A stretch of DNA of 64,000 nt from Oculina patagonica (GCF_052425735.1 NC_135761.1:59644001-59708000), one strand, 5' to 3'; numbered from the stretch's first letter, positions 6,684 through 56,156 are shown. The notes: generated by a model from the sequence alone, not told the origin. Translations and numbers: made by a program.

Positions 6684-9600
6684 ATCAGTGAATACTTACA
6701 GCAGGTGCCTGTGGCTGTTGAATGAGTTCATGAAGTAAGACTTCCTTCATGGGGTATCTGTTTGTGTCTATTGACTCAAATGTTTTCTGGTCTGTCAAAC
6801 ACAAGAGCACAAACTATCAGCACAACCTGCATCATGGAACTGAGTTTCACAGCATACTCCCACCAAAATTGAAAATACCCTGAGATTGTTATCATGAGTT
6901 TATTACTACCATAATCTTACTTACTGTTCTTAGAGCTTTAATTTAATTTAAATATGATAACAGGACACACAACTGTTAATTCCAGTGGTGATAAGTGTTA
7001 TTAATTATCTTGTTGTAACATACAGTAATTGAGCTTCATAAGATCTTAATAAAAAGAAAAAAAAAATATTTTAAGAACTGTAATTACATATACAGTACAC
7101 TGTACACTGTATGTTACAGGACTGGTCAAATTTAAATTCAGGTAAAAAAAAATAACCCAGCTTTTTTCCAACCTAGGTAAAATTTAGCATGGTTCGTACA
7201 TCTTCAGGCAAACAAACTTCAAGGACTTTTTCGGAAGAACAAAAAGTTGTTTGCAAGGACTGAGCGAGCTACATGTCTATGCACTATCAGCCATGTTGCC
7301 CCTTCTAACAAAACTGCATGGCAAAGAACACCACATCAGAGGCCTGGTGCAAGCCCTGGTGCATGAAATTGGGCAAAGATCTACATAATGCTTCATGTAG
7401 GCGTTCAAGTTTAAGAACAACATTTTCACAAGTTATTTTCGTATTTTAGAAGTTGTTCCTGACCAAACTTTCCTTACCAAAATAACTTAATTTATCAAAA
7501 AAGTAATAGGGCATGCAAAAAGCCCTAAATTTCAAGGACTTTTCAAGACCTAAGGAGGAAATTCAAGTCCTTTTCAAGGACTTAACCAAATTCAAGGCCT
7601 TTTTAAGACGACTGCTAAAATTCAAGACTGTACAAGATTGTACAAATCATGATATAGGGTTACTATTAGGATTAGGGTTTGCATTGGAGTCTTTTTCTTT
7701 TTAAAAAAAAATAGTGATTCAACCAATGTTTCTTCCATGTATCTGGAGGTCGAGCATTCAAATCCTAGAAGTGCAGGTCAGTGAAATGATAAAAAAAAAC
7801 TGGTTAAAACAAATAACCTAGGTTACAAGGTAACCTACAATGGAGGTCAACAATACTTGGGACACTTGTGAAGGAGCATTGAATAGCAAAAGAGATATTA
7901 CTCCAAGGATTGAAACTGTGGATTCTATGTGCTCCCAAGTCCCCAATTCCCCTCTCCAAAGCCCCCCTCCCCTGGTCCAAGCAATGTTGACAAACAAATA
8001 TGCCATGATATTGATGTGTGGGGTGGGCAATTTTCAACAATGCTTGGGGGGAGGGGGGAGGGGGGCTAACAGTCATTTAGCCCACAATTTGCTAAGTGTC
8101 CCAACATTTTTTGTTCTGCATTGTAGGTTGAAAAAATGAGCTCATTTTGACCTGTAACACATACAGTACATGGCAATTATGAATAAAAAGTCACATTGTG
8201 AGCTTGAAAATTACCAAATGAAAACAGAACCACTGTATTAATCACTTTATTTGCACTGAAATCCATTTCAGCAGCAAAGAAGTCCATCATGGCTTCCCAG
8301 ATGTGCTGCACTTGTGCTGCAGACGTGTCCACCCTGACTATTCTGTCTTCTACACCAAAATAGTGTAAGAAGTCGCTCACTGACTTCTCATAAAGCGCAA
8401 AGCGTCGCTTTGTTCTACTTGTATCCATTTCATCACCCTGGTCAGAAGATGCATCCTTGGGATCTTTGCTCGGCGGCTTGGCACAAGCAGGAGAGTGGCT
8501 GTTCTTAATGTTTTTGAGAAGAGTCTCTTTGGATAGTGTCAAATTTAATGCAAATGCACAAGGACACTGAAAGAATTTAAAACAACAACAAAAATTAATG
8601 TCAGACAAAACCTACAACACATTGCCAAACATACGTCTGCGTATGTGCGTATTTGCGTATAAGGTGCGTATACGATGGACGCTTATTTCTGGGGGGTACG
8701 TAGGTACATGTACATGAACAGTACAAATGGAACATTTTACCTTACATGTAAATATTATTACAGAAAATGNNNNNNNNNNNNNNNNNNNNNNNNNNNNNNN
8801 NNNNNNNNNNNNNNNNNNNNNNNNNNNNNNNNNNNNNNNNNNNNNNNNNNNNNNNNNNNNNNNNNNNNNNNNNNNNNNNNNNNNNNNNNNNNNNNNNNNN
8901 NNNNNNNNNNNNNNNNNNNNNNNNNNNNNNNNNNNNNNNNNNNNNNNNNNNNNNNNNNNNNNNNNNNNNNNTACTTTTTATACTTATATAAATTTTTTTT
9001 ATGTATGTATTTTGCAATTAACAACTACATTTCACGATTTTGACACGAGGTCCAATTTACTAATTTATCGTATCAATAACAAAATTCGAGGTAAGGAAGT
9101 CTTTGAAAACTTTTTTTGTGTAAAAATGCCAAAGATAAATTCTTAATTGGTTGTTCAAACAGTAGGAAAACAGCAAAAAGGGACCCATTTGAATGCATGT
9201 GATTGAGGCGCAAATAGCGTACTTGTCATAGGTGTCAATTTGAACAACTTCATTGGTCGTATTTTCCCCTTATGGGACAATAACGCATCAAAATCAAGAA
9301 TTTTGTTACAGATACGATTAATGGGGTAAAATTATAAAGGATTATGGTTGTGATTTCAGAATGTGGCCGTTGGCTGTACTGGGCGCTTTGTTGGGACAAA
9401 AAAGTGACCATTAATAACAAGGTGGCCATAAGGCAGGTTCCAGTGTAATTTGATAAAAATCCACCAAAATGAATAGCAAGTACAGTTGTCCTAGCACTCA
9501 TTTTCAGTAACAGTAGAACTGCAGTTTCACATTTTACCTTCCTTTCAAACTCTTCCATTTCTTTATCACATTTCTTGATGAAGCCATCCACTCTCATCAT

Positions 9601-36372: not shown

Positions 36373-36647
36373 TATGAGAAAAGCCAACGTAGATTTAATA
36401 GTCGCTGCGTTTTTCTCCTTTTAATAATTCAGCTTCAAACTTTTATAAATCCCCTGTCGTTTCCTCGCGGAACTTGGAAAAAGAAATTACAACACCCGAA
36501 GTTCTGAGACAATGTATGAGAAAAGCCAACGTAGATTTAATAGTCGCTGCGTTTTTCTCCTTTTAATAATTCAGCTTCAAACTTTTATAAATCCCCTGTC
36601 GTTTCCTCGCGGAACTTGGAAAAAGAAATTACGACACCCGAAGTTCT
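36373..36647. repeat. 142-bp-period tandem duplication overlapping the GPCR stop codon
   Basis: Two near-identical copies of AAGCCAACGTAGATTTAATAGTCG...AAAGAAATTACRACACCCGAAGTTCT. Confidence 0.9.
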
Positions 36648-37678
36648 TCAGGTCCACCTTGAGTTCTCAAAACCGTATTTGAACGAAAAACACGCATTTC
36701 GACCTCTTCTGCTTGTTCAAGTCGTCTTCGGAACAGCAGATGAACAAATGCAACCCGAAATTGTCTGTTCCTAGCCGCGTAAATCAATGGATTCATGAGT
36801 GAATTTAATAATGTCAAAGCAACAGCAAGGAAGAAAACGATGTATGTAACGTTAACAACCATAGCTTCAATGAAATAAGAAATCGATATTGCAGGAAAGT
36901 ACCACAGAAAAACTGTTATGATAATAATAGTTGTTGTTTTCAACGCTTTCTTTTCTTTCACAAATTTTTGTCTTACCTCGAGTGAAACTTGCTGGGAAGC
37001 GATTTGTTTTTCGTGGCGACGTACCTCGATATAAACAACGATTTGGCATATAACAATTATTGGAACTGTACAAGGTATAATAACATGTTCAAATAAGACC
37101 ATAAGAAATTCAAAATGGATCTCTAGGAAATCCATGATTCCTGGGAATAACGCCAAAATCCAAGTTATCCCAGAAGCGATTATCAAACGTGTAGCTGTGA
37201 TGTGACTGTCGTGGTAAAAAGGATGTTTTACTGCCAAACAACGTTCCAAGCTTATCAACACCAAATGAAACAGCGACACGGCGCAGAACACGTTAAAAAG
37301 GACTCTGGAAATCTTTTCGAATGCACAAACCTCGTTAACGTTCTTTCCTTCAAGGAAGAAAATTGCCATTGCAATATAGGAAGGTTGAACAGTTAAAGCG
37401 ACCATAAAATCAGTCGCTGCTAAGCAAGCGAGCAAAATGTTTGATTTTGTTCGAAGTCGACGCGTAGATTTCACCGCCACAATCACCAACGCATTTAAAA
37501 AAATCGTAAGAGGCAGGGTGAGTAGTGAAACAATTGTTGTGAAAATTAGAACAGTGTAAACCTCGGCCGAAAGTCTACCTGATTTCCAAACAGGCAAAAA
37601 GGCTCCATAACATTTACTATCTGGTTCGTCCTCAAAGAACTGCGATGTTGCAGTAGAATTCATATTCCTTTGGTTCAT
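36629..37678 (-). CDS. Class A GPCR (adenosine/melanocortin-receptor-like orphan), paralogue 1
   Basis: LAATD, ERC (DRY variant), WYFP and NPLIY motifs; single coding exon. Confidence 0.92.
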   Translation of the reverse strand: MNQRNMNSTATSQFFEDEPDSKCYGAFLPVWKSGRLSAEVYTVLIFTTIVSLLTLPLTIFLNALVIVAVKSTRRLRTKSNILLACLAATDFMVALTVQPSYIAMAIFFLEGKNVNEVCAFEKISRVLFNVFCAVSLFHLVLISLERCLAVKHPFYHDSHITATRLIIASGITWILALFPGIMDFLEIHFEFLMVLFEHVIIPCTVPIIVICQIVVYIEVRRHEKQIASQQVSLEVRQKFVKEKKALKTTTIIIITVFLWYFPAISISYFIEAMVVNVTYIVFFLAVALTLLNSLMNPLIYAARNRQFRVAFVHLLFRRRLEQAEEVEMRVFRSNTVLRTQGGPEELRVS

Positions 37679-37834: not shown

Positions 37835-38372
37835 TTTATACGTTTTTAAAATATTTTTTAAGGTCAGTTACAATTTTTTTTTGCCGGATTCGAAAAAAAA
37901 AAAAAAAACATAAACATAATCATATGTAGTATGGTGGCCCATCAGTGCCATAGTATTTTACGCCGGTATTTTAACATTTTTCCCTTTTTTTATATATATT
38001 TTTTATTGTTTTATACTTATTTTATATTTTTTCTCTATTTTTTTTATTCTTTTTCATTTTATTTCTTTTATTTTTATTTTTATTTTTATTTTTTATTTTA
38101 TTTATCTTTTTTTCATTTAATTTTTATTTTATTTTTTATTTTTTTATTCTTTTCCATTTTATTTCTTTTATTTTTATTTTACTTTACTTATCTTTTTTCA
38201 TTTAATTTTAATTTTATTTTTTTAAAAAAATAAAAAAATAAAAACGGCTATGGCCCACAAGTGCCATAGCAAAAAAAGAAAAAAAAAAAAAAAAAAAAAA
38301 AACTCCGTGGCCCAGGAGTGATGCATTGAGAACAGGGAAGGAGTAGTCACCAGGCTTTTGGCCGTAAACAAC

Positions 38373-40755
38373 ATGGCGGCGCGGATAAGAAACGACTCGT
38401 GGAAATATGATGAAGAGCTAAAGCGGGATTTAGAGGAATACGTGAAGCAGATGCTGAAGAGGGACGAGGTTTTGGATTTTGTTTCCAAAAAATATCCAAT
38501 GTATTCCTGGAGTTTGCGTACTCTTTGTCGTCGTTTGCATTACTTTGATATAAAGTACATCGACTATGAAATAGAGCTTGATGATTTGGAAGAATCCGTG
38601 CGCGAAGAATTGAATGGTCCGGGAAAGTTGCTAGGTTATCGTGCAATGACTAAAAAGATAAGAGAAATTCACGGTCAGAAAGTTCCAAGAAACCTGGTCT
38701 ACGCTATGATGGAGCATGTCGATCCCAGTGGCCTTGAAGAACGAGGAGGTATCGGGCAACCAAAGCGAGCCCCAAAGGGTGTTTTTACCTCAAAGGTAAA
38801 CGTAGATTAAGCTTATTTTAAGCCTATTCTAACTACACTTTTAGATGTATTCATGAAACATTGTTTGCACCGACGGACGTGGCATAGTCGAAAATCTGAA
38901 CTGGACTCTGGACTGGACTCTGGACTCTGGACTATTTTTCAAATATTACTTAATATTGACTCTTCACTTCACACTCTTATTTTAGTTATACTGTTGTTAT
39001 ACTTTTATGGTCTTGTTTACAGGGTTCAAACTGGACATTGTCCTTGGATGGACATGACAAGCTTTGTGGCTTTCAAAATTCAACTTTTCCATTGTGTATC
39101 TATGGTGGGCTGGACACATTTAGTGGTAGAATGCAATTTCTTCGCATTTCAACATCTAACAGCAATCCAAAAATTGTTGGTCGATACTATTTAGAGTATC
39201 TATATGAATCAAGAGGTTTGTTCTCCAACTATTTTCCATTTGTTGATAGAGTAAATGTAAAAGATAAAATACTAGCTGAAATTTCATCTTCAAATCTGCC
39301 TTGAAAACTTAAGTTTAAAGACATATGATAGCAAATATCACCTCTTTATCTCCTCTTCTTTCTGTATGTGACATCTTTTTTTGTTGAATTGAAGTGGGAG
39401 GACGTTCATGAGAGAACTTTGTATTCTCATAATCAGCACAAAATTCAAATTTTAAATTTGCTTTAGGAATAAACATAAGGCAGAGTCCACGTTTTTGGTC
39501 TAAGATAATATGCTGCATTCATCTCTGTAAAGAAAAATCACAATCATCAAAGACATTTGGTACATATTAGAGCGTGTAAAATGTTGTTATTGAATTAAAT
39601 GCAATTTTTAGGTCTTCTTCAGTGTCTGATTATTCTTATAAAAACAAACCTTGTGATTGTTAGCTTGACACAATGTTTTGTATCATTTGTTCATGTTTAA
39701 TTTAGTTTTTGTGTTCTCTTATGTTTTGGACATAAGTGCTTCCATCAAGACTACGTGTTGACAAGGGCTCAGAAACAGGGATTATAGCAACCATGCACTC
39801 ATATCTTAGAAGTAAACATAAGGACCTCGACGATCCCACCGACAGTGTACTTTATGGACCTTCTACAGAAAATAGAATAGAGCGTTGGTGGAGAGAGCTC
39901 TTGGATCGAATGGAGAAGTTTTTTTAAAAATCAACTTAATCAGCTCTTGGAGGATGGCAGTTATGAACATGATAATGAACTGCACCGGTTAGTCCTGGAT
40001 TTCTTTTGTTTTCATTTTTTGGAATAGAAAACTGACAAAAACCTTGTCAAAATATAACTGCTTGGAATAATAATTGTGCCAAGGTAGATAGTGATTTTAT
40101 AGTTTAGGGCAACAATTTTTACCTTTGCCACATAACATAAAAGGGGCTGTCTCATGGTTATTTCTTTACTTTTGGCACATTTTTTTACTTGGTTTGGTCA
40201 AACATAAAATACCGTATTACAAACTACAGATGTATACTGTAATAAACTGAAAACAAATTTATAGCAACAGGCCCATTTTCTCATATTTTTGAGACCCAAC
40301 TAAAAGGATTCTTCAATGGTCCTGCTCATAGTGCAAGATTTATTTTTAATTACACCAATAATAGTGAAACAAATGATACTTTTTCTTTCGACAGAGATTT
40401 ACTTGCATTTGTTTACATCCCAGTTATCCAGAAAGAACTTGACCTTTTCAGAGAAACTGTATGGAATTCCCACCGTGGTCGCAAACAAAAATTGAAAGAG
40501 CTTCCAGCTGGAGTGCCAAACCACATTTACAATTTTCCTGAGAATTACGGGGGTGAAAACTGTGGTTTTCCTATCACTGAAGATCAGTTGGAGGAAGTTG
40601 CAGAACTGTCTGAAGTATTGGAGGACACTGATGACTTCTTAGAACCTGAATTTCGAAAGTGTTGTGAAGCAGTTATCTCAAACGTTGACAATATTGAGCC
40701 AGCAGATGCTGCTGATGCATATTTATATCTCAAAGCAAATATAAAGCTAACCTAA
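38373..40755 (+). CDS. DDE transposase / integrase-core protein; exons 38373-38795, 39023-39215, 39737-39987, 40395-40755; one +1 frameshift at T7 39919-39925
   Basis: HTH-like WSLRTLCRRL and LGYRAM; catalytic D in SLDGHDKL, D in LRVDKGSE, E in NRIERWW; WNSHR motif in exon 4; GT-AG introns with compatible phases. Confidence 0.88.
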
Positions 40756-40852
40756 ATGGTTGTAGTGCATGTTTTGCCCAAGGGCTTGTGTTTTCAAGAA
40801 TTGCAAAGAAAAGGCATTTTACTATTATCACTAGTGAAGCCGGAATGGTACT

Positions 40853-43800
40853 TGTAGCCACGAGCGTTCAATTTTTGCATGTTTGCGTGTTTGCGTTGTA
40901 ATTAGTTTGTAATTCCCGTCAGTATTTTTGTTCGGTTTTTGGTTTCTTTGTTAGCGTAGCTCATTATTATGTATTTCTCTGCTAGTTGGTTTCTCGGCCT
41001 AGTATTATGTAATCGTTTATTGTTAATTTTCGTAACTTCGTTAGCGCTATTGTTTGTTTTCAGTCAGTATAAAATCTCGCACGCTTTGCTTGTAAATTAG
41101 TTTTCGTTTTATCCGGTTTGCCGTACAATCTTGTAAGTATTTGTTTTTTCCTTGTATTTTCTCGATTTTGTTCTATTAATGTATTTCGTCTTATAGTTAA
41201 GTTTCAAGTTCTAGTTTATTTATTCTACGTTTTCTTTGTTTTACATGTCCTAGTGAATCGTAAAGTTTATTAAAAGGCGAATTCAAATTGTACAAGGAGT
41301 ATTTGCTACATTCATTCAAAGATTGTGTGGATGGATGCCGTGTGGTCCGGAGATGATGGTCTTGGAACTGAACCTCTAGGAAGACGCCGAGTCCATTCAA
41401 TGGAAGCCCTCGACAGTGTACGTCTCAAGAATTCGAGGGCAGGACATTTGTCCAGAGTAACGGCGCTGTGTCGTGCGACCGAAAATTTGCTTAGTGACGC
41501 GAAAAATGTTGATGGAGTCACGAACAAATTACAAGAAATCAATGAAGCTTTCTCCCGTTTCGAAAGGACCCACTACGACTACATCGCTTCTTTGTCTGGT
41601 GATCTGGAGGTGTGGGAAAGCGAAGCGCGTTATTTTCAGGAACATTACCGCCGAAAGATGAATTTTGTTTCGCGAATCGAGCAATGGATTCATCGCGCAA
41701 GATCATCCCCTGAGGTACGCGAAGTCAGTGAACCAAATCCGGAGGATTCCGTAAGTACTGCGAGTTCTTCGCAAAGTTCATATCTATCTATCAGACAGCT
41801 AAGGGCCAAGCAGGCATTGGCGCATTTAAAGTTGTACCAGTTGAAAAAGAAACAAGAATTGTTGCGTCGGGAAGAAGATACGAAATTGAAAATGGAGGTT
41901 CTCGATGCGCAGTGTGAAATCCGAAAAGTGGAACTTCAAGTAAACATGCTACAGGATGAGGGGCCGCCCGCTCAAGATGACTTGTCTAGCGTTTTTGAGG
42001 ATCTGAATCCGTTCAACGAACGTGTTGATGCCAGAGCTAGAAATGTACCGAAGCAGGAACATTTTGAACATCGAAACGATCAAACAACTGGTCCTCAAGA
42101 CGCCCCATTGCGATTCAATCCAAAAGCGCGGGAATTTGCAAGTTTGCCACCTGCTTCAACTGCAGCCTTTACTGGTTTAGGACCAACTGGTTCTATTATG
42201 ACTGGACAAATTATGGACAAGATGGCATTAACAATTAAGCAAGGATTTGCGTTGCCAAAAAAGGAGTTGAAGACGTTCGATGGTGATCCTCTCAATTACT
42301 GGAACTTTATTAAATCGTTTGAGAACAGTATCGTAAACAATGCAGCCAGTGAAAGTGACAAACTTATGTATCTTCTTCAGTACACATCTGGTGTAGCAAA
42401 TGACACGATCAAGTGCTGTTTAGTCATGGATTCTTCCCTGGGCTATCAAAGGGCAAGAGAACTGCTTGAAGAGCGATTTGGACACCCCTTCACAATTGCC
42501 TCGAAATACGTAACCAAGTTAACGGAAGGACCCCCGTTAAAGCCATTGGATCGCAAAGGATTGTTGGCATTTGCTGACCAGTTGAAAGATTGCGAACATA
42601 CACTAGAATCGATTGGATATCTGGATGAAATTAACAGCGCAGACAATCTGAGGAGAATTGTTCAGAGACTGCCGTTCCATCTCCGTACCAAGTTTATTGA
42701 AGTTGCGGACCAAATTCAGCAAGCTGGTCAGAGGACAAATATCAGTCACATTGCAGAGTTTGTCAAGGTTAAGGCGAGGGCCGCGAACAATCCTGTGTTT
42801 GGTTGCGTGGTAGACGTTGCGAGCCAGAGTGAAAGATCGGAAAATCAGAGGCGTAAACCAAAGTTTAAGAGCCCCACTTTACCTGACGAACGTGCCAGCA
42901 CATTCAATACACAAGAGACTGAATCCGGTGACAGACACAGTTTGCCTTCCAACAGAGTGATCCCAGCCATCAGATTTGCGAAATGTCAGGCGTGCAAAGG
43001 TGACCATCACTTAGTGAAATGCAAGAATTTCAAAGACAAAAACTTCGAAGAACGTCTTCAAGTGATGAAGAGAGCTCAGTTATGCCACAACTGCTTCAAG
43101 TATGGTCATATTGCAGTAGGATGCTTAGCAAAGAGTGCATGTGAAGTTCAAGGTTGCCGAAGAAGACACCATACTTTGCTCCACCCTCCGCCCTCCGCCT
43201 TCGCCCCCACGCCTCCGCCTTCACAGCAAACGATCGAAAGTAGAGAAAGAGCAGCAGAACAAGGAGCTCAAGTAGCCGGTAGCACTCCATTACAAAGTGG
43301 TCAGGCCAACAGTACTTCAGCAGGTGGAGGAAAGGTGTGCCTGAGAGTAGTTCCTGTAAAGGTGCGAGGACCTGATGACGCAAGCAAGACGGTGAACACT
43401 TACGCCCTTCTTGACAGTGGTTCAGACATTTCCTTGTGTGACAAGAATCTAGCAGTCGAACTCGGAGTACATGGAACCCAGAAGACGTTCTATTTAACAA
43501 CTCAAGAGAGAGAAGATAGCCCAAGAGTTGGTCTTGAAATCAGCCTAACCGTAGAGGCACTTGACGGAGCAGATAAAGTAGACGTTAAGAGACTGTGGAC
43601 TGTTGATAAATTGAATGCTTCAAGTCACAGTATTCCGTCACAAGATGATGCAAAACAGTGGCCTCACTTAAGAGACATCAAGCTGCCAAGTATTTGTGAG
43701 AAAGAAGTCGGGCTGATTATAGGCACCAACGCTCCTGACGCATTCTGGGTGCTAGAGGAAAGACGCGGTAACAGAGGAGAGCCGTATGCCATTCGTACAC

Positions 43801-46800
43801 CACTTGGCTGGACTCTCATGGGCCCCATGGAGAAGAGCGATAGCCATAACTGTCATCTGAATGTTAATTTTGTTCGCTCAGCGGAAGTTGAGAGAAAGGA
43901 TGATGATTGTCTCATGCAACAGCTTGAAAGGTTCTGGGCAGTAGAGAACTTTGGAGTGGTCCCTAACTGCAAAGCCAGTATGTCAGTGGAGGACAAGAGA
44001 ACCCTTGCAATCATGGAACAGTCAGTGAAACTTGAAGATGGGCATTATCAAGTGGCGCTTCCCTGGCGACAGTACCCACCATTCTTGCCTTTCAATCGAT
44101 CTATGGCAGAACGCAGGCTGCAAATGCTGAAGAAAAGGTTGCAGCAAGATGGCGAGCTCTTTGAAAATTACAAGGCCACCATGGAACAGTACCTTACCAA
44201 GGGTCACGGGAAAAGAGTGCCATTGGACGAAGTCCACACACGAGATAAGCCACTATGGTACTTGCCTCATCATCCCGTAATGAACAAGCCTGGAAAAACT
44301 CGCGTGGTTTTCGATTGTGCAGCTAAATACAAGGGAACGTCTTTGAACGATCAGCTCCTCACTGGACCAGATTTGACAAATTCTGTTGTCGGTGTGCTAA
44401 CACGGTTTCGTGAAGAACAAGTTGCGTTATCCGCTGATATCGAGTGTATGTTTCATCAGATAAGAGTTGCACCAGCTGACCAAGACGCCTTCAGATTCCT
44501 CTGGTGGCCGGATGGCGATCTGACCCAAGATCCAGTTGATCATCGCATGGAAGTCCACCTATTCGGTGCAACATCTTCACCAAGTTGTTCCAACTTTGCT
44601 TTAAGGAAAACAGCGGAGGACAACCAGGGCGAATTCTCAGAGGAAGTTGTTAAGACTGTCAGGAGGAACTTTTACGTCGATGACTGCCTGAAATCAGTTA
44701 AATCTGCTGAGAATGCTGTCGAATTGGTGCACCAGCTTCGAGATATCCTGTCCAAAGGCGGTTTTCGACTCACAAAGTGGTCCAGCAACTCATCAGAAGT
44801 CCTTAAGACCATTCCGCAAGTAGAGAGAGCCAAGTCAGTGTTAGACCTTGACTTAGACAAGGGAAAACTGCCGATTCAGCGTACCCTTGGGCTACACTGG
44901 GACATGGCGAGTGACAAGTTTTGGTTCAATGTGGATCTAAAAGATAAACCGAACACCCGTAGAGGTATACTGTCCGTGGTGAGCTCCGTGTATGACCCGC
45001 TTGGATTCGTTGCGCCAATCATCGTGCCTGCAAAGAAATTGCTGCAAGATCTTTGCAAACAGAAACTTGGATGGGACGACCCCATCAGTGAAATTGACGG
45101 AGAAAGATGGGAGAAGTGGAAGAGTCAGTTGGCAAGTCTTTCTCAGATTACAGTGGACAGATGCGTTAAACCAGCCAGCCTTGGAGACTTGAAGGTCGCG
45201 GAGCTACACAACTTTGCAGATGCGTCACAAATTGCATATGGAGCAGTCTCGTATCTCAGATTGGTAGATATCGAGGATAGAATCCACTGTACATTTCTCA
45301 TTGGAAAGTCGCGCCTTGCCCATTTGAAACCAATGACGGTGCCAAGACTAGAACTGTCAGCGGCAGTGTTAGCTGTCCAGCTAGACCAGACTGTCAGAGA
45401 AGAGCTGGACATCCCAATTTACCAATCGACATTTTGGTCTGACTCCACCTGTGTGATACAGTACATCAGAAACCAGTCTAAGCGTTTCCATACATTTGTT
45501 GCCAACAGACTATCAGTAATCCATGAGAATTCAGCACCTCATCAGTGGAGACATGTTAGTTCTGAACTCAACCCGGCGGATGAAGTCAGCAGAGGACTTA
45601 CAGTAGAAGAAATGAGTACAACCAGCAAGTGGCTGAATGGTCCCGAGTTTCTGAAGAAGAATGAAGAGTTTTGGCCTCCTGATCGTTCAATCTGCCAACC
45701 AGAAATACGAGAAGATGATCCAGAAATTAAGCGTGAAAACCAGTCCCACAGTCAGTCATTGACTCATCATCCAGGCAAAGAAGTTCTGTCCAGTTTGATG
45801 AAACGCTTCTCATCGTGGGAAAGATTGAGAAGAGCTGTTGCTTGGCTGTTGAGGTTCAAAACGTGGTTCATGGCGAAATACAGCCGTAGTCCAACTGACA
45901 CCAAAGCTCAGAGCAATCAAGAAAGAGGACCCCTCCTGTCCGTGAATGAAGTTCAGGGAGCTGAAAGAGAAATTATCAAGCATGTTCAAAGGTGTTCATT
46001 TCCAGACGTTATTCAAGCCATGCACAGAACCAGTTCATTGAAGTCTTCACGTCAACTAACCTCCCAGTTAAAGAACCTGAAGATACCAGCCCATATGTGC
46101 AAACTTCACCCGCAGTTGGACGACAGTGGAATCCTTAGAGTTGGAGGACGTCTTGAAAACGCTCTAATCGACTACAATGCTAAACATCCGATTATCCTGC
46201 CGTATCGTCACCAAGTTACAGATTTGATCATCTCTGAGCATCATCAGAAAACTGGCCACCTGGGTCAAGAGTACGTACTATCCAGTTTGCGTCAACTATA
46301 CTGGATAATAAAGGGGCGTTCAGCTGTGCGTCGAGTAATTTGTAGCTGTTTCCCGTGTAAGAGACGTGGTGCAGTACGTGGAGAGCAGCTGATGGCCGAC
46401 CTTCCGAAAGAAAGACTGATGTCAGGAGATCCACCGTTCACCTATGTAGGCGTAGATTATTTTGGACCCCTTTATGTGCGTCAAGGTCGCTCGAATGTGA
46501 AACGTTATGGGTGCCTGTTCACTTGCCTCGTCACCAGAGCAGTCCATATCGAGGTTGTACACTCACTTGATACCGACAGTTTCATTAATGCAGTGCGAAG
46601 ATTTACCAATCTAAGAGGAAGTCCGTCAACCATTTACAGCGACAATGGAACAAATTTCCATGCAGGAGAGAGAGAGCTACGAGAGTCGTTGAGAGATTGG
46701 AATCAGCAATCAATCCAAAAGTCCCTTCGTCAGAAAAATATCAGATGGAAGTTTAACCCGCCTGGCGCTTCGCACATGGGTGGTGCCTGGGAACGTACGA

Positions 46801-47934
46801 TAAGGTCCGTTCGTAAGATCCTGAGGGCCTTGCTAGGCCAACAGCTTGTCTCTGACGAAATTCTGAGAACCTTGATGAGCGAAGTTCAAGGGATCTTAAA
46901 CAGCAGACCGTTGACCCCAGTCAGTAGCGACCCAAAGGACTTGGAGCCTATTACTCCAAACCACCTGTTGCTGTTAAGAGCCAACCCAAATTTGCCTCCC
47001 GGTGTCTTCACCAACGAAGAAAATTACAGCAAGCGACGATGGCGTCAAGTCCAATATATGTCTGACATATTCTGGAAGCGCTGGTTAAGAGAATACTTGC
47101 CAACCCTACAAGAGAGAGCTAAGTGGATCAAACCTCGCCGTTGCTTGGCGATCGGAGACCTGGTATTGATTGCAGATGAAAATGTTCACCGCGGAAAATG
47201 GCCGTTGGGCAGAGTGATCGAAGTTTTCTATGGCAAGGACGGATATGTCAGATCAGCAAAGGTTCAAACGAGTTCAACGATTCTCACAAGACCAGTGACG
47301 AAACTTTGCTTCCTGGAAGGCGAGAAAGCAATTTGATTAAAGTAACTGAACTTTCCTTCAAACAAACGGAAACTACATGAACACTAAGGATATTCAAGGA
47401 GAACTTAACACTCGTGTCTTAAAATAGTGAAGCTGTTAATGAACTGTTAGACTTAAGTAGTTCATTGGGGCCGGCGTGTAGCCACGAGCGTTCAATTTTT
47501 GCATGTTTGCGTGTTTGCGTTGTAATTAGTTTGTAATTCCCGTCAGTATTTTTGTTCGGTTTTTGGTTTCTTTGTTAGCGTAGCTCATTATTATGTATTT
47601 CTCTGCTAGTTGGTTTCTCGGCCTAGTATTATGTAATCGTTTATTGTTAATTTTCGTAACTTCGTTAGCGCTATTGTTTGTTTTCAGTCAGTATAAAATC
47701 TCGCACGCTTTGCTTGTAAATTAGTTTTCGTTTTATCCGGTTTGCCGTACAATCTTGTAAGTATTTGTTTTTTCCTTGTATTTTCTCGATTTTGTTCTAT
47801 TAATGTATTTCGTCTTATAGTTAAGTTTCAAGTTCTAGTTTATTTATTCTACGTTTTCTTTGTTTTACATGTCCTAGTGAATCGTAAAGTTTATTAAAAG
47901 GCGAATTCAAATTGTACAAGGAGTATTTGCTACA
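40853..47934 (+). mobile_element. Full-length BEL/Pao LTR retrotransposon
   Basis: 458-bp TG..CA LTRs (40853-41310, 47477-47934) with no mismatch seen by eye; 5-bp TSD GTACT; GGGGCCGGCG PPT-like tract before the 3' LTR. Confidence 0.97.
41325..47336 (+). CDS. BEL/Pao gag-pol polyprotein (~2000 aa; real ATG probably 41331 or 41400)
   Basis: FDGDPLNY gag, three Cys/His knuckles, protease LLDSGS, RT YVDD, RNase H HNFADAS, integrase GVDYFGP/SDNGTNF/WER; uninterrupted. Confidence 0.96.
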
Positions 47935-48718
47935 GTACTAGTGGTCCAGTTATTCATGATTGAAGATAACAAATATATGTACACCTAGATGGAACTAACT
48001 CACATGTATTGTACAACTGTATCCTGCAACATGACAAAAAACATACATTTATTGTACTCTGTGAACAGAACTTTCGAAGAACAGTGATATTGCCTTAAAG
48101 TAGCAGCAACAAAAAAAAATTCAACTTACAAAGGTTTCTAAGTCTCGTACACTTATGTAAAACACACGTATACGTTTACACGTATGTAAAATAACCACAA
48201 GATAGCTGAATCCTTTACAATGATGTATATTCAACTATAAATTATACAACTGAATCACAATTGCCCAAATTCTTAACAGCAGAATGGCAAGTAAACACAA
48301 TATGACCTTAATATTTGAACAAATCAACATTGAACTTCTTAACTTTTCACTTATCAGTGGCCATCTCAGAGAAAGGGGGGAGGGGGATGGTGGGGAACCA
48401 CCAGGAAGACTTTCTCAAGTATATTTCTTGAATGTTTATGATGGGATGGATCTTTTATTTTTTTAAATGGTAGTGGTAACAACTCCTGTGGGTCTTTCCA
48501 TGTATAATAGCCTGATACAAAAGTGCACAAGTAATCCAATCAAGTATGTACCCAGAGTCAACCAGCCCCAAACCCACATCTAGGTATAGCCACTGCTAAG
48601 TGCACAAGAAAATTGAAAAGGAATCCTAACTTTAACTTTTAAAAATATTCAGATCCCATGCTACCCTCCTCCACCAACCTCACATGTCAAATAATTACAC
48701 CTAAGCAATGACAAAAAC

Positions 48719-49210
48719 CACAGGGAACCCGAACGCTGTATTGGCAAAGTTAATAATGAAAATAAAGATATGTTTGTTACCTGTGCTCCTGTGTCTTTCT
48801 TTGTCCTTAAAATGGTTGTGCTCTTGTGTCTTTCTTTGTCCTTAAAATGGTATTTGAATCGGTGCGAAAACGGTTTGAGCAAGCCTTGTCTGACGCTCCG
48901 TAAATAACGACGCAGTTAACACGTCTCGTATTTCCATTCATGTTATTAACTATTTCTTTCCATATTAACCATTAACACTCCTGGCAAAGTTAATAATGAA
49001 AATAAAGATATGTTTGTTACCTGTGCTCCTGTGTCTTTCTTTGTCCTTAAAATGGTTGTGCTCTTGTGTCTTTCTTTGTCCTTAAAATGGTATTTGAATC
49101 GGTGCGAAAACGGTTTGAGCAAGCCTTGTCTGACGCTCCGTAAATAACGACGCAGTTAACACGTCTCGTATTTCCATTCATGTTATTAACTATTAATTCT
49201 CAACGGGAGA

Positions 49211-49246
<36 letters not shown>

Positions 49247-49540
49247 CGTTAAATTGAAATACGAGATTATCTCCCCAGGAGTGTTAATGGTTAATATGGA
49301 AAGAAATAGTTAATAACATGAATGGAAATACGAGACGTGTTAACTGCGTCGTTATTTACGGAGCGTCAGACAAGGCTTGCTCAAACCGTTTTCGCACCGA
49401 TTCAAATACCATTTTAAGGACAAAGAAAGACACAAGAGCACAACCATTTTAAGGACAAAGAAAGACACAGGAGCACAGGTAACAAACATATCTTTATTTT
49501 CATATTTAACTTTGCCAATACAGCGTTCGGGTTCCCTGTG
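48719..49540. mobile_element. P-superfamily-like foldback MITE with internal 240-bp duplication and central (GA)n
   Basis: CACAGGGAACCCGAACGCTGTATTGGCAAAGTTA termini (CA..TG); 7-bp TSD CAAAAAC (48712-48718, 49541-49547). Confidence 0.82.
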
Positions 49541-51027
49541 CAAAAACCAAACCCTAACGGTCTTTCTATTGTATGGCTGGCAGCATGCAGGCTAAATAAA
49601 ACTAGTTCTAGCAAAACTGCAGGACATTGGCCAAGTTAAGGGGTTGTCATGAGTCACAACTGGTTTAGGGCGACAGGAATTACATGTAGGTGATACTGAG
49701 GAAATTTTCAACATTTAAGGTGGCTACTGACAGTTTAGAGTCCTCACTGTGTACCACTCCGCATAATCACTGATATGTGATACCAGTCCAAAGATCATAA
49801 CGCTAGCTAGCGCTTAACAGGTTACCATGGCAATGAGAAAACCATTTAAAAACAATCTTTGTTTACACTCTAGGGCTCATAACTCAAAAACTTCTGCAAA
49901 GTTTTATTGACTATTTAAATTTTAGGCAGCACAATCTAAACTTTGCAGAAAATTTAATTGTGGCATGCTAATGAATGATTTGCCACTAGTCGGATCCTGT
50001 GTTTTGCGTGGAGGATTCTGGGATCGCTAGGGGGCAAACATTGCAAGTCGCTAGAAGAAGATGTATGGCGAAAAGTTGTTTTGACGCTCAAAAATACGAT
50101 TTTGGAGGGAGATCAAGGCTTTTTCACCAGTATTTTATCAGAAATGGATTTGGGCAATGTTGGTACGTTGAAAGTGTTAGGTTTTGTTTGAATAGCCGTA
50201 AGATATGCGATAAAATCTACCGCTTTTATGAAGGTTTACATGTATTGTGAAATCGACATCGCGTATTAAACTGGGGTCTCGAAATATTATAAAATTGGAA
50301 ATAGCTCAATAAAGCCCTTCCAGTAGATATTTAACGTTTGCACAAGCTGTAAATTTATTAGTCACGTCTTTTATAAACAAATAATTATTATGGCTTCGTA
50401 ATATTAAAGGTGACAGACATTCACAGACTCCTACGATCGTGACTTGTAAATTTCCCAATCGCTTTTGGATTTGGTCGTTTATTAAATCTATTTTGTTTAT
50501 TACTAGTTTATAACGGGAACTATATTCTGTCAGCTGTATTATTAAGAAGTGTTTTAAGCTGAGTAGAGCCCTATCAATGCCGCCAGCAAATGTGTAGAGG
50601 TCGAAGGTCTGCGTTAAGTTCCACGGTAGTACACTTTTACACCTCTGCACTGTATAATTTATTGTTTATATATGAACTTTATGTATTGGCTATTGGAACT
50701 GTTGTGATTTATCTTGGCTCATTTATATTTGCAAGATGTGCTTTAAATTCGTTCTGAAAGGACAAGATCTTAAATTTTCCTTGAAGATGTTGATTAGTAC
50801 AGTGTTGCGTAAATGTGTTGCTTCGTATCGCGGATGACATGTTTATTTTTATTTTGTTTAGCCAGAGGCTGCTTAGCTTTACTTCGAGAAAGATATAACC
50901 TTGTTTTAGAGCCGGCCATGCTCATGACAAATCATCTTTTTTATTTTTGGGCGGGTAGAGTCTTAATATTCCATCGCGAGGAAGAATCTTTTGCCTCTCT
51001 GGGTACCTTCGATAGTTATCACGAATT

Positions 51028-51178
51028 GCAGTCACATCGTTCCAAGGTTACTTCGTTCCAAGTCACATCGTTCCAACTTTTGGTCAGATCGTTCCAAAAA
51101 AAAGTCACTTCGTTCCAACTAAAAGTTACTTCGTTCCAACTAATAGTTACTTCGTTCCATCGAAAAGTCAGATCGTTA
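51028..51178. repeat. Short tandem array of GTYACWTCGTTCCA units
   Basis: Seven to eight copies at 15-22 bp spacing. Confidence 0.85.
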
Positions 51179-52067
51179 TATTAATTTAATAAAGAGAATG
51201 TTTATAAGAAAACATTATCGAAAACATTACTACTCGATGTTGTTAAATTTTGTAATGCATGCGCTCTACCGTTCGTTACGAGCAATACGGTTTTTATTAC
51301 GTCTTAGTTTGCAGTTGTACCTTCCAAATTAATTTGTATGCCTTTACCTGTTTAGAATTCCTTGCGTAGTTTTTTTCTATCAATTGCTTAACACCAAGTT
51401 TATCGAATATTTTCGGTGTCTGTTACGTTATGCGTCGGTGTGATTGAGAAGAAAAGTTCGCCATGTTGAATTGTTTTTGAATCCAGTTCCCTACCGCGTA
51501 TAACGAAAAGTAAAGAAGGGAAGAGAGGGGTGGGGGAGACTTTGGTTATGTTAATGCATCAGTCAATTGAAACCCCGGCCCCCCGACCCCCGGGACTTAC
51601 CGGGGAATTTAACATTTACCAAGTGATAAAACCCGGCTTATTTCCCCGCCCTAGGGGCCTAGACGTCTGTTAAAAGCCCCGCATAGAGGGGGCATCCGAA
51701 TCGACTTTCAGGAAAAAAAAACGGACAAAAATCTTGATTTCGTTGCAGTAACTAACAGGTTTTTAAGAGAGATGCTCAGTGTGGTCTTTCAAGAAAGCTC
51801 GTTCTAATTCAATGGAAAAGATTCTCTTTTACTGATAAGCACATCAAACAGCCATGGGCACGACAATCGCGCAGTTTCTGCTGTCATGTCAAGGCCAAAA
51901 TAGAAAACAAAATAGAAGAAGGCTATCCTTTGGAAACGATTTATTGTCGACGTCTTTTAAACTCATGTGGGACACAAGAAGAGACAAAATAGAAGAATTT
52001 CATCTTAAGGTAAACAGCTTTCACCCTACGATATAATTCACGGCTGAAATCTCAGAAACAGAAGCTA

Positions 52068-53089
52068 CATCAAAGACACCACTCATTTTATAAACTTCGT
52101 TGAAAACACTCCACTTCCAGACAACGCGGTTCTAGTTACTCTAGACGTTTGCTCCCTCTACACTAACATTCCTCAAGAGGAAGGAATAAGTGTTGTTTGT
52201 CAATATTATGAAGAGCATTATCAGTCGAAACCACCGATCCCAACATCATTCTTGGGAGACCTCATGAGACTGATCCTAAAAGAAAACTCTTTTAAATTCA
52301 ACGACAAACATTATTTGCAAACGCACGGAATCGCTATGGGCACCAAAATGGCCGTAGCCTTCGCAGTCATTTTTATGGCTCACATCGAAAAACAGCTACT
52401 CCTAGCCAGCCCACACAAGCCTATACTCTGGAAAAGATTTATCGATGACATATTTTCAGTGTGGACTTTATCCGAGCGAGAAATCAGCGACTTTGTCGAC
52501 TTCGCTAATTTATTCCACGCCACTATCAAATTCACGCATGAAATGTCATCAGAAAAAAATTGTTTTCCTTGACACTGAAGTTTTCAAAGGACCGCGATTC
52601 ACTGACAGCAAAACTCTGGATGTTCAAACTCATTTCAAGCCTACAGAAACTTTCCAATATACGCACTTCTCTTCGTGTCACCCTTTCAGTGTTAAAAAGG
52701 GTTTTATCAAAGGAGAGGCCTTGCGTTTACTGAGAACAAACTCGGTTAAAGAAATTTTCGAGTTACGAAAACTAGAATTTCTGACTCGATTACTCGAGCG
52801 AGGTTACCCTCGGGAACTCGCCGAGAAAATCTTAGCCGAAGTAGACTTCTCAACACGATCTGAGGCGTTACTAAACAAAACTGCAACATCCAACAATGTT
52901 TTGCCTTTTGTCACTACTTTCAACCCGACTGCTCCGAATCTTAAAAAGATTCTAATGAAACACTGGCATCTCATAACTGAGAACAACAAACTCGCTCAAA
53001 CATTTTCTAAACCTCCAATTGTCGCTTATCGGAAGGACAAGTCTCTGAAAGACATTTTAGTCAGAGCAAAAATTCCTTCCCAGATTTAA
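52068..53089 (+). pseudogene. Penelope-like element reverse transcriptase, 5'-truncated, one frameshift at A7 52553-52559, no GIY-YIG
   Basis: IKDTTHF, LDVCSLYTNIP, QTHGIAMGTKMA, RFIDDIF, FLDTEV, KPT..QYTHFSSCHP; ends LKDILVRAKIPSQI*. Confidence 0.88.
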
Positions 53090-53804
53090 CAACAACATTT
53101 AGGAGTTATATACGGTAAGGGTCGAGTGACAATATTATAAAACATACCGCACAATGATGACAGTGATCGCTACCGGCTGGGCATACAAAATTATTTGTAT
53201 AACTTAGCATAGAAATAATCCTGTACACACGTAAATACAACCCAAAAGGCTTTATTAAGTAATTTCCTCCCGATATATACCTAACTTGTAATATTTCGAG
53301 ACCATTTTGAGATGTCAATTTCAAAATAAACCTTACGAAAGCAAGGAGACCAAGGAGGTTTAGGTTTATCGGTAAACTTGATCACATATTTTCACGGTTA
53401 TTCAAACAAAAACTTGCACTTTTGAGTATCAACAATGCCCAAATCCATTCCTGATAAAATACTCGCGAAAAAGCGTTGATCTCTCTCCAAAATCGTATTT
53501 TTGAGCGTCAAAACAACTTTTCGCCATACATTTTCTTCTAGCGACTTGCAATGTTTGCCCCCTAGCGATCCCAGAATCCTCCACGCAAAACACAGGATCC
53601 GATTAGTGGCAAATCATTCATTGTTCTCCAAGAATATATTAGGGGTCACCAATGTTGTTTTTTTTCTTTTGAGTTGCATGTATGAATTCCTATGGCCAAA
53701 ATGACATGCTTAAATGGTTCTCTAATTTCTATGGCAACCGAATAGGTCTTTCAAATGATGTTATATTTAAGGCAGACAAAAAGCATCGGGTTCCATCTTT
53801 GTAC

Positions 53805-55152
53805 TTAATCTGAAATTTGAAGGAGGTTGCAGTACTTATTGCATTTGTGGTCTGCTAAAAAGTTCGCAATGGCGTCCGTAGATAAATTCCCAGAACAGAA
53901 CAGAATGGAGTTGTCAGTGGCGTCAGTCAAGCTGGCACTTGCTATTTCTGGATCACAGAGGTCATAGTCAATGCCTTGTATATCTAAAACCATCAGTTGT
54001 TTGCTTGACTTAACGTAGGTAAAGTGAACGAACGCTTCAGCTTTGGAGATGATCTCGCTACTGCCGGCATAACTGCATCTTTTGAAAAGTGCCATCCAGG
54101 AAGTTTTCGACGGTAACGAATTCGCCGTTCAACACTGAATAATACACTTTTGTATAGGTAAAGCTTTTACCAAATTCTAAAGCGGGCTTATCCGTCTCCA
54201 TGATTTGGGCGAAATTACGTGCGAGCGCATTCATCTGAACAGCTTTCCTGTTGTGTGCCTCCGTAGAAACAAACAACTTTTCAATATCAGCGATTCGATC
54301 TTCTCTATACTTTTTCAGCACATATTTCCCAGGAGGTAGGCCAGACATCGAAGTCGCTATGTAGGCGTCACGGAAGCCGCCACTCGCAAAAGAACTCTTA
54401 TCCAAAGATAAGGTGACCTCGATAGGTTGTTGCCATTCTCGCTTTGAAATGGAAAACTCTTCCAAGTGCAACTTTACCACCTCGAATTTTGGCAGGATCA
54501 ACCGCCCCAACTTCAACATTTGACTAAGCGGAACAGAGGTCGCAACAGTACATGCTGCTTTCAGTTGGCTGGCCTTCTGCGGGCTAGCCGGGGAGCTATT
54601 CGCAACTACTCGAGTGCTTCGGCCAGGGAGGATAACTGAACTTCGATCCATGCCAGTGTTTACATTCTCAATGAAGCGAATGTGGACCAGTTTCCAATTT
54701 TTTATCTGTGAAGCGTCCGTATACGAAGGACCGCGTTCCCCCGCAAGCAAGTCAGGAAAGATTTCCGCACAGCCCCCTACATTAATTATGTATGCAACTG
54801 TTTCATACTATCACTATACACAAGCAGCAATCATGAAAAGAACGAATCAGTCAGAATATTGTATGCATAATTAATGTAGGGGGCTGTGCGGAAATCTTGC
54901 CGCAAGTCACATTCCATTTGCGTACCGAAATGCGCTTTACAGGCATCTTTGATGTTTTCTAATGTTGGTTCTTTTTTCCAGAGGAACCATAGTTAGAGGG
55001 CCAATTCTCGAATACTTTTGGCATTTACCCTCGACACTTGACGATAGCCTTTGCACAGTGATGTAATCAGTCGGCATGCCATCCTCTCGTTTGCCCATTC
55101 GTTTCTTCGAAGTCTTTTCTTTGAAGTCCGCCCATTTCCTTTTCCCAGACAT
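53805..55152 (-). pseudogene. Alpha-kinase (eEF2K/MHCK/ALPK family), intronless, ~400 aa when repaired; disrupted
   Basis: FASGGFRDAY (Gly loop), YVLKKY (catalytic Lys), VENFL, AEAFVHFTY, LMVLDIQG, LCDPEI, GNL and HKCNKYC zinc site. Lesions: +1 at 54972-54977, MITE 54755-54901, frameshifting deletion at ~54080. Confidence 0.9.
54755..54901. mobile_element. 147-bp MITE (GG..CC termini, 8-bp TSD; Merlin-like) inserted in the alpha-kinase CDS
   Basis: TIR GGMAAGATTTCCGCACAGCCCC(C)TACATTAATTATG; TSD GCAAGTCA at 54747-54754 and 54902-54909. Confidence 0.88.
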
Positions 55153-56156
55153 ACTCAGCAGTTTTATAAGATGTGTTTCAGGTCTGGTCAAGGGAAACAA
55201 GCACAAAAAGAGCGGGACGTAAATGAACGGTCGCGAGCGTGCGTTTAACAGAGAGCCTGGTGACTACTCCTTCCCTGTTCTCAATGCATCATGGGCTATG
55301 GCACTCCTGGGCCACGGAGTTTTTTTTTTTTTTTTTTTTTTTTTGCTATGGCACTTGTGGGCCATAGCCGTTTTTTATTTTTTATTTTTTTAAAAAAAAT
55401 AAAATAAAAATTAAATGAAAAAAGATAAGTAAAGTAAAATAAAAATAAAAGAAATAAACTGGAAAAGAATAAAAAAAAATAGAAAAATAAAATAAAAATT
55501 AAATGAAAAAAGATAAATAAAATAAAAATAAAAATAAAAGAAATAAAATGAAAAAGAATAAAAAAATAGAGAAAAAATATAAAATAAGTATAAAACAATA
55601 AAAAATATATCTAAAAAAAGGAAAAAATGTTAAAATACAGCGTAAAATACTATGGCACTGATGGGCCACCATACATATGTAATTGGGTCATTAGCGTGCT
55701 TAAAACTCGCGTATGATAAACAATTTCGAAAATTTCAGATTTAAAGACATCCTGCGAGCAGACTCCCTTTTAACTTTCCTGCGGCTGAAATTTATTTTCA
55801 AGCATATCAGTGAAAAATAAAATGGCTCTGCTCGCAGGGTGAATAAAAGATCGAACTTTAAAATGTTTTTCTCGATTTTGAGCGTTTGTAAGATGTTTTT
55901 ATTGAAAGCTCCAAAAAGAGCTAAGATTTAGTAACTAATTTTACAGCTTAAAAGGGGTTTAAAATGGTTTCAAACTCGGAGCGCAAATAAAATTTAAAAG
56001 CGTGAAATATTTCGTCTGATATCGACTTCAACAGTCAATGAGGTGGTGTTTTTTTAGATGAATGTTAAGAAGACATTTTAATGTCTCGGGGGAGTTAAAA
56101 TTCTGTCATAAATTGGAGCTCATTCAAAACCATTGTCTCTATTTAACAAAGGTTTT

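Follow-up and report, generated by a model that had tools for sequence, protein, structure and literature searches.

An alpha-kinase gene in four pieces

The minus strand of positions 53805-55152 in the 64,000-nucleotide stretch of Oculina patagonica DNA analysed here (the window) carries an alpha-kinase gene in four colinear pieces, designated A to D in the order of translation. Piece A (54976-55152, 59 codons) contains the start codon, a basic tail (MSGKRKW..KKRMGKR) and, according to its translation and the alignment of homologues, the first beta-hairpin of a predicted ubiquitin-like domain. It is 92% identical to the homologue P0038. Piece B (54903-54971, minus strand, 23 codons, EPTLENIKDACKAHFGTQMECDL) supplies the helix and the third strand of the same domain. 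Piece C (54061-54753) and piece D (53808-54095, followed by the stop codon at 53805-53807) overlap around 54080 and are read in different frames. Invariant alignment columns and an AlphaFold2 model place the end of the ubiquitin-like domain, which includes a near-invariant G-E-R-G-P-S loop, at 54667-54753 (DLLAGERGPSYTDASQIKNWKLVHIRFIE). An unconserved Ser/Pro-rich linker, predicted to be disordered, occupies 54538-54666. The Pfam profile PF02816 and an alignment of the homologue P0002 with the structure 1IA9 assign the region 54079-54537 to a conserved pre-kinase helix (SVPLSQMLKLGR) and to the N-lobe of the alpha-kinase, with its GGFR loop and the lysine of the YVLKKY motif. The C-lobe and the stop codon follow at 53805-54078, all on the minus strand.

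For database searches, the pieces were used separately and unjoined, and folding was done on the intact natural homologues P0038 and P0002. Piece C alone retrieved relatives at E values of 1e-73 or better in a protein search, which rules out a chance pattern. The NCBI protein P0001 of O. patagonica matches it with 100% identity, and numerous proteins about 400 amino acids in length were retrieved from Acropora and other corals. Seven intact homologues align end to end with pieces A, B, C and D, and the sole gap in this alignment (A1) is found at K-Y-[IV]-N-N-x-G-x-x-C-G. We are highly confident of the identity of the gene and of the architecture described here. The intact gene very probably consists of about 405 codons, and encodes a K/R-rich tail of about 30 amino acids that is predicted to be helical, a ubiquitin-like beta-grasp domain of about 80 amino acids, a disordered Ser/Pro-rich linker of variable length, and a complete alpha-kinase domain.

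An original prediction, made from the DNA sequence, held that the alpha-kinase can be rebuilt as a single intronless open reading frame. This is supported by the colinearity of the pieces, by a near-identical contig without the three lesions of the window copy (see below), and by intact relatives that are encoded in a single exon. Among the latter are P0022 (403 amino acids in 1212 nt, locus L001) and P0073 (434 amino acids in 1305 nt, locus L003). The gene model in Saccoglossus kowalevskii GL011254.1 (L002) separates the basic tail from the ubiquitin-like domain by a 414-nt gap (8097-8510). Whether a true intron or an insertion, this gap sets the model apart from the single-exon coral copies, so that the description as intronless may fail in parts of the family.

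Three lesions and an intact natural copy

The coding sequence in the window is interrupted at three places. The first is an A6 homopolymer (54972-54977, minus strand) with one A too many, which causes a +1 frameshift inside the ubiquitin-like domain and splits pieces A and B. It is apparent from the reading frames, and from contigs of two public runs (X1 and X2) that are one base shorter at 54972. The second is a MITE of 147 bp (54755-54901) inside the coding sequence, which splits pieces B and C. It has 43-nt terminal inverted repeats that are 93% complementary, and is flanked by a perfect 8-bp direct repeat (GCAAGTCA, 54747-54754 and 54902-54909), the target-site duplication. A target-site duplication of 8 bp is typical of hAT-type elements. 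Together, the MITE and one of the duplicates amount to 155 nt. The third lesion is a 23-nt deletion between 54078 and 54079 (minus strand), which shifts the frame and removes the K-Y-I-N-N-x-G segment, as judged from the X1 contig, the gap in alignment A1 and the gap in the Pfam match. At the junction (54079-54078), the last bases of the missing 23 nt are AAAGT and those of the retained upstream flank are AAAAG, and the deletion may have arisen by slippage at a 4-nt microhomology.

The X1 contig (3632 nt) carries the same species label as the window. It spans 53620-55260 with 12 substitutions, is about 99% identical to the window gene, and is free of all three lesions. Exactly the 155 nt from 54747 to 54901 are absent from it (joint 54746->54902), as is one base at 54972, and 54078 is followed by 23 nt that the window does not have. 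When reverse-complemented, these 23 nt translate in frame to Y-I-N-N-T-G-K, with two bases left for the following codon. In the X2 contigs, from a second organism label, the MITE site is likewise empty and the A run likewise shorter. The informative X1 and X2 contigs derive from public runs with no library type on record. The three lesions that the original prediction had postulated, namely an extra A, a MITE together with one copy of its target-site duplication, and a deletion near 54080, were thus borne out exactly.

Within the open reading frame, 7 of the 8 substitutions that distinguish the X1 contig from the window are synonymous. If a quarter of random changes were synonymous, a rough binomial estimate for this small sample would be about 6e-4. 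The pattern indicates that the window copy and the X1 copy diverged while they were under purifying selection, with the reservation that few changes could be counted. At 53620, the X1 contig ceases to match the window, which contains another insertion there, with inverted repeats at its ends. In view of this divergence at the insertion edge, the contig probably represents a paralogous intact copy rather than an allele.

The comparison with the X1 and X2 contigs raises the question of whether some of the lesions could be assembly errors, in which case the window would show more damage than the real locus has. Homopolymers such as an A6 run are classic sites of one-base errors, and the lesioned form of the window is found in no X1 or X2 contig. 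However, contigs drop rarer variants, which makes the absence of the lesioned form uninformative, and the X1 contig probably derives from a paralogous copy in any case, since it also diverges at the nested insertion. Moreover, assembly artefacts do not typically take the form of a 23-nt deletion, or of a MITE flanked by a perfect 8-bp duplication. Hence, it is unlikely that some of the lesions are assembly errors. We conclude that the window copy is a dead pseudogene: three independent lesions destroy its frame, and the transposon that hosts it is riddled with nested insertions.

The MITE family is present in high copy number. Contig depth is 125-490 on the MITE and about 18 on the kinase gene, and the MITE contigs have many different flanks and many loose ends from other copies. 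In the polyA RNA run X17, 6 reads were mapped, mostly on the MITE, and in the small-RNA run X14 the count was 0.

The NCBI model of the locus treats it quite differently. P0001, a hypothetical protein of 280 amino acids that ends at the frameshift stop, would imply a live spliced gene with an intron that extends from a GT in the ubiquitin-like domain to an AG in the MITE. The splice sites are canonical, and the identity of P0001 to piece C is perfect. Yet in the model, MITE-derived codons replace some 40 conserved residues of the best-conserved domain, and translation stops ahead of the catalytic C-lobe. The postulated joint (55026->54783) is present in no read or contig, and the empty MITE site is the sole joint seen at the gene. 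A live spliced gene of this form is extremely improbable, and we take P0001 to be a detour of gene prediction around the lesions of the pseudogene.

The alpha-kinase domain

The Pfam Alpha_kinase profile (PF02816, curated cut-off 21.3 bits) matches piece C over profile positions 1-103 with 22.2 bits, and piece D over positions 114-185 with 74.4 bits. Positions 104-113 are missing between the two pieces. Intact homologues score 116-128 bits against the same profile. The catalytic and metal/zinc motifs YVLKKY, DIQG, DPE, GNLS, FVHFTY and HKCNKYC are present in the window, with equivalence to the TRPM7 motifs taken from the alignment of P0002 with 1IA9 and from alignment A1. Those of the C-lobe (D-I-Q-G, D-P-E, G-N-L-S, F-x-H-F-T-Y and H-x-C-N-x-x-C) are all intact. 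The window has lost the K-Y-x-N-N-x-G segment that lies between the two lobes, but the X1 contig has it, as do all intact homologues, with N308 and N309 as invariant residues. Its loss makes the window copy a pseudogene, while the assignment to the alpha-kinase family stands. The earlier suggestion of a dead copy without the KYxNN motif is therefore upheld by the 23-nt deletion, by the unmatched profile positions and by the intact segment in the X1 contig.

The solved structure closest to P0002 is the TRPM7 kinase (1IA9, E 2.6e-16). P0002 shares with TRPM7/ChaK1 the aligned motifs YxxK, KYxNNxG, FxHxTY, DxQG, DP, GNL and HxCNxxC. In contrast to TRPM7/ChaK1, the transposon-borne protein is soluble, has only about 400 amino acids and starts with a beta-grasp domain, and it has neither a channel nor a TRPM7-type dimerisation arm. 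Kinase fragments of TRPM7 have been reported to act in the nucleus. The catalytic domain also resembles that of the Dictyostelium myosin heavy chain kinases (MHCK) A and B (PDB 3LKM, E 1.4e-12), but no coiled-coil or WD40 domain was detected in the transposon kinase family. The MHCK label of many homologues is a transfer from the catalytic domain only. As had been anticipated from the sequence, the architecture is unlike that of eEF2K, ALPK1-3 and TRPM6/7, and Alpha_kinase is the sole Pfam domain in full-length members. A full-length AlphaFold2 model of P0002, based on an alignment of 20 sequences, has a mean pLDDT of 58, with values below 50 in the C-lobe. This model is poor and says nothing on contacts between the ubiquitin-like domain and the kinase.

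A predicted beta-grasp domain at the N-terminus

Every full-length relative has the N-terminal segment, which the original prediction had described as an uncharacterised domain, in well-conserved form (alignments A2, A3 and A6). A Pfam search with residues 1-125 of two members identified no family at E<=10. In a profile search of PDB sequences with the N-terminal domain, the best match was a designed coiled coil (E 4.1, not significant). Nothing on this domain was found in the searchable literature.

The closest intact N-terminus, P0038:1-125, is 92-94% identical to the pieces in the window and was modelled with AlphaFold2 from 28 aligned sequences. The model has a mean pLDDT of 78.5, with values of 83-93 for residues 31-110. 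A helix in the basic tail is followed by strands E32-43 and E48-59, helix H66-77, and strands E82-86 and E106-111, in a beta-beta-alpha-beta-beta arrangement. The best PDB matches in a Foldseek search are the UBL of HOIL-1L, SUMO, ubiquitin and NEDD8, with E values from 2e-3 to 5e-2. In an exhaustive structural search against 48,161 chains, the top 50 matches are all beta-grasp proteins (Z 4.7-6.0), and comprise UBLs, PB1 domains, Ras-binding domains, FERM F1, DWNN and CIDE-N domains. Structural comparison among the 1000 best Foldseek matches again placed only beta-grasp proteins in the top 50, among them ISG15 (Z 6.6, with an rmsd of 2.4 Å for 70 residues) and ubiquitin (Z 6.0-6.5, 18-21% identity). 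By the tool's own calibration, Z values up to 6.6 are middling, so that the fold class can be claimed, but not a subfamily. On the basis of the model, the N-terminal domain of about 80 amino acids probably adopts the beta-grasp fold. The predicted likeness to ubiquitin or PB1 domains thus holds at the level of the fold: the core has a pLDDT of about 90, the AlphaFold2 and Foldseek check gave a confident beta-grasp fold with all top matches in this class, and ubiquitin and ISG15 scored slightly above PB1.

With ubiquitin, ISG15, NEDD8 and the built-in UBLs of Rad23, parkin and HOIL-1L, the model shares the beta-grasp topology (Z 6.0-6.6, rmsd 2.4-2.9 Å over 68-74 residues, 16-21% identity). The transposon domain differs from all of them in having a family-specific invariant G-E-R-G-P-S loop, and it belongs to none of their families at the sequence level. 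It ends in H-[IV]-R-F-[IV]-E, followed by the linker and the kinase. A C-terminal Gly-Gly is absent, which identifies it as a built-in domain and not as a conjugatable modifier. The combination of a kinase and a ubiquitin-like domain in one chain is reminiscent of TBK1 and related IKK-type kinases, and the ULD of TBK1 matches the model with Z 4.7-4.9, but this is an analogy only. TBK1/IKK-type enzymes have a conventional protein-kinase fold with the ULD placed after it, whereas in the transposon protein the ubiquitin-like domain precedes an atypical alpha-kinase.

Other beta-grasp modules come close to the model as well. The domain could be a homotypic or scaffold module of the PB1, RBD or CIDE-N type, through which the kinase would oligomerise or bind a small GTPase, and it would then have no ubiquitin-like docking surface. 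The PB1 domains of p40phox (Z 5.3-5.4) and p62 (Z 5.3), CIDE-N domains (Z 5.8-5.9) and RBDs (Z 4.9-5.3) all lie within about one Z unit of the best ubiquitin and ISG15 scores, and gaps of this size are treated as ties by the tool. Nevertheless, the top ranks go to ubiquitin proper, ISG15 and NEDD8, which also lead in structure-based identity (18-21%). Even at E<=10, Pfam gave no match to PB1, RA or CIDE-N, and when alignments A2 and A3 were inspected by eye, the conserved G-E-R-G-P-S-x-T loop was seen to have no acidic cluster of the OPCA type. Such a module therefore appears less probable, though it deserves more weight than the other alternatives considered here, and we continue to describe the domain as ubiquitin-like.

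Distribution and constraint of the protein family

A search of 1.84 billion cluster representatives with the profile of the ubiquitin-like domain gave 786 matches at E<=1e-3, and 383 at E<=1e-10. Alpha_kinase was present in 17 of the 39 long matches, and one further match was a chimera with a retroelement integrase (rve); there was no other partner domain. Intact colinear homologues of about 400 amino acids occur in Acropora, Oculina, Exaiptasia, Paramuricea, Dendronephthya, Actinostola, Sanderia and Saccoglossus, and in a "GoldUCD" set. The "Seg...GoldUCD" entries are presumably from an Aurelia (jellyfish) genome set. The database labels of the family include MHCK-like ("myosin heavy chain kinase-like"), TRPM6-like, ALPK1-like and eEF2K. 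Fungal sequences were found neither among the cluster representatives matched by the domain profile nor among the named family members.

The degree of conservation differs between the parts of the protein. For 17 members, down to 33% identity, the mean pairwise identity is 52% in the ubiquitin-like domain, 45% in the C-lobe, 38% in the N-lobe region, 26% in the basic tail and 11% in the linker. The linker varies in length from 34 to 88 amino acids among these members, and has a pLDDT below 50 in the full-length model. Judged by sequence identity, the orphan ubiquitin-like domain is under stronger constraint than any other part of the protein. The N-terminal tail is always basic, with a median of 11 K/R against 5 D/E in 37 amino acids. 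Of 102 full-length members, only 43 conform to a strict bipartite NLS pattern, as does the window copy. It is reasonable to infer from the sequence of the tail that the kinase may be nuclear.

The host transposon

The kinase gene is located within an element of 17.7 kb (37929-55674) that is delimited by long terminal inverted repeats. The left repeat (37929-38356) pairs with the right one (55254-55674) through the inverted repeats I4-I14. The start codon of the kinase lies some 100 bp inward from the inner edge of the right repeat, which is about 420 bp long. Both ends carry the identical sequence TATGGTGGCCCATCAGTGCCATAG and begin with TATGGTGGCCCATCAG..., and a start with TATGG... is compatible with TA termini. 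Elements of the IS3EU/GingerRoot type have TA..TA termini and a 6-bp target-site duplication (PMC10045372). No clean 6-bp duplication was identified in the flanks of the 17.7-kb element.

An IS3EU-type transposase gene is found at the left end of the element, with exons at 38373-38804, 39023-39217, 39736-39924 and 40393-40743 on the plus strand, so that it is convergent with the kinase gene. The exons were identified by tblastn against the protein encoded next to P0022 in L001, which carries the Pfam domain rva_4, and they also match L002 and L003. The convergent pairing of transposase and kinase is thus seen in the window, in L001 (Oculina), in L003 (an ENA assembly) and in L002 (Saccoglossus). 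The inverted repeats and the convergent pairing with an rva_4-related transposase show that the element is a transposon of the IS3EU/GingerRoot type, with the kinase as its second, convergent gene.

A similar arrangement has been described in fungi, where IS3EU families carry an alpha-kinase gene opposite to the transposase (Kojima 2025, PMC12730594). The fungal and the present kinases have in common that they are encoded by a second gene in opposite orientation to the transposase. However, the kinase is mentioned only in passing in that work (PMC12730594), for fungi and with nothing on an N-terminal domain, whereas the hosts here are cnidarians and a hemichordate.

The public names of the homologues ("myosin heavy chain kinase-like", "TRPM6-like", "eEF2K"), and the NCBI annotation of the locus as a host hypothetical protein (P0001), would suggest an ordinary host gene that is merely located near transposon debris. 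This is difficult to reconcile with a gene that begins about 100 bp inside a 420-bp terminal inverted repeat, the partner of which flanks a homologous transposase, and with the recurrence of the convergent pairing at three other loci (two coral-type contigs and one from a hemichordate). In addition, the hundreds of cluster representatives at 50% identity, many of them fragments, fit a multi-copy repeat, and the domains that accompany the kinase in MHCK, TRPM6/7 or eEF2K are all missing. An ordinary host gene is therefore highly improbable. We estimate the probability at roughly 85% that 53805-55152 is a decayed copy of an intronless accessory gene of an IS3EU/GingerRoot-type cut-and-paste transposon of O. 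patagonica.

Several other features were noted in the vicinity. A BEL/Pao LTR retrotransposon with an uninterrupted open reading frame of 2003 codons (41325-47336, plus strand) is nested in the IS3EU element. The frame has Pfam matches to Peptidase_A17, RVT_1, Integrase_H2C2, DUF1759 and DUF5641, and the BEL/Pao element looks young. Immediately downstream of the kinase gene, a stretch of 3.65 kb (49970-53622) with 197-nt inverted repeats (95% complementary) holds reverse-transcriptase-like open reading frames at 52252-53089, and the one that was tested had no Pfam match. As the X1 contig diverges exactly at its edge (53620), this stretch is a further nested insertion. A foldback with arms of 266 and 213 nt (99% complementarity) and internal 35-nt repeats is located at 48719-49540. 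An intact intronless open reading frame for a rhodopsin-family GPCR of 349 amino acids (36629-37678, minus strand; Pfam 7tm_1, E 8e-23) lies beyond the left end of the transposon, at a distance of about 250 bp.

Discussion

The role of the intact protein can be addressed only tentatively. The basic tail could take the kinase to the nucleus or to DNA. There, the ubiquitin-like domain might serve as a docking module that selects a partner, either the transposase of the element itself or a ubiquitin-reading factor of the host. The flexible linker would let the alpha-kinase phosphorylate this partner or its neighbours, with the transposase or a chromatin or repair factor of the host as possible substrates, and phosphorylation could in turn regulate transposition. 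We regard this scheme of docking and regulation as possible, but would not expect it to be correct in full. A more far-reaching version, in which the ubiquitin-like domain and not the kinase is the functional heart of the protein, and plugs the transposon into the ubiquitin-reading machinery of the host, is clearly more speculative and seems doubtful at present. If it were true, IS3EU/GingerRoot elements as a group would control their transposition via ubiquitin signalling, and the lineage with a ubiquitin-like domain and an alpha-kinase would have added phosphorylation to this control.

The pairing of a kinase with a transposon is already on record. The architecture of a ubiquitin-like domain with an alpha-kinase, and the strong constraint on the former, are modestly new, and the small alpha-kinase family thereby gains a new arrangement of domains. 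The accessory genes carried by eukaryotic DNA transposons have seldom been understood, and the present kinase is a clear and testable case. The findings also have a consequence for annotation, because dozens of cnidarian entries that are named "myosin heavy chain kinase-like", "TRPM6-like" or "eEF2 kinase" are transposon genes. The copy in the window, although a pseudogene, is valuable as a pointer to its family: a two-domain protein of about 400 amino acids, conserved in corals, jellyfish and a hemichordate and invariably encoded next to the same transposase, the best-conserved part of which is ubiquitin-shaped and stands without a family assignment.
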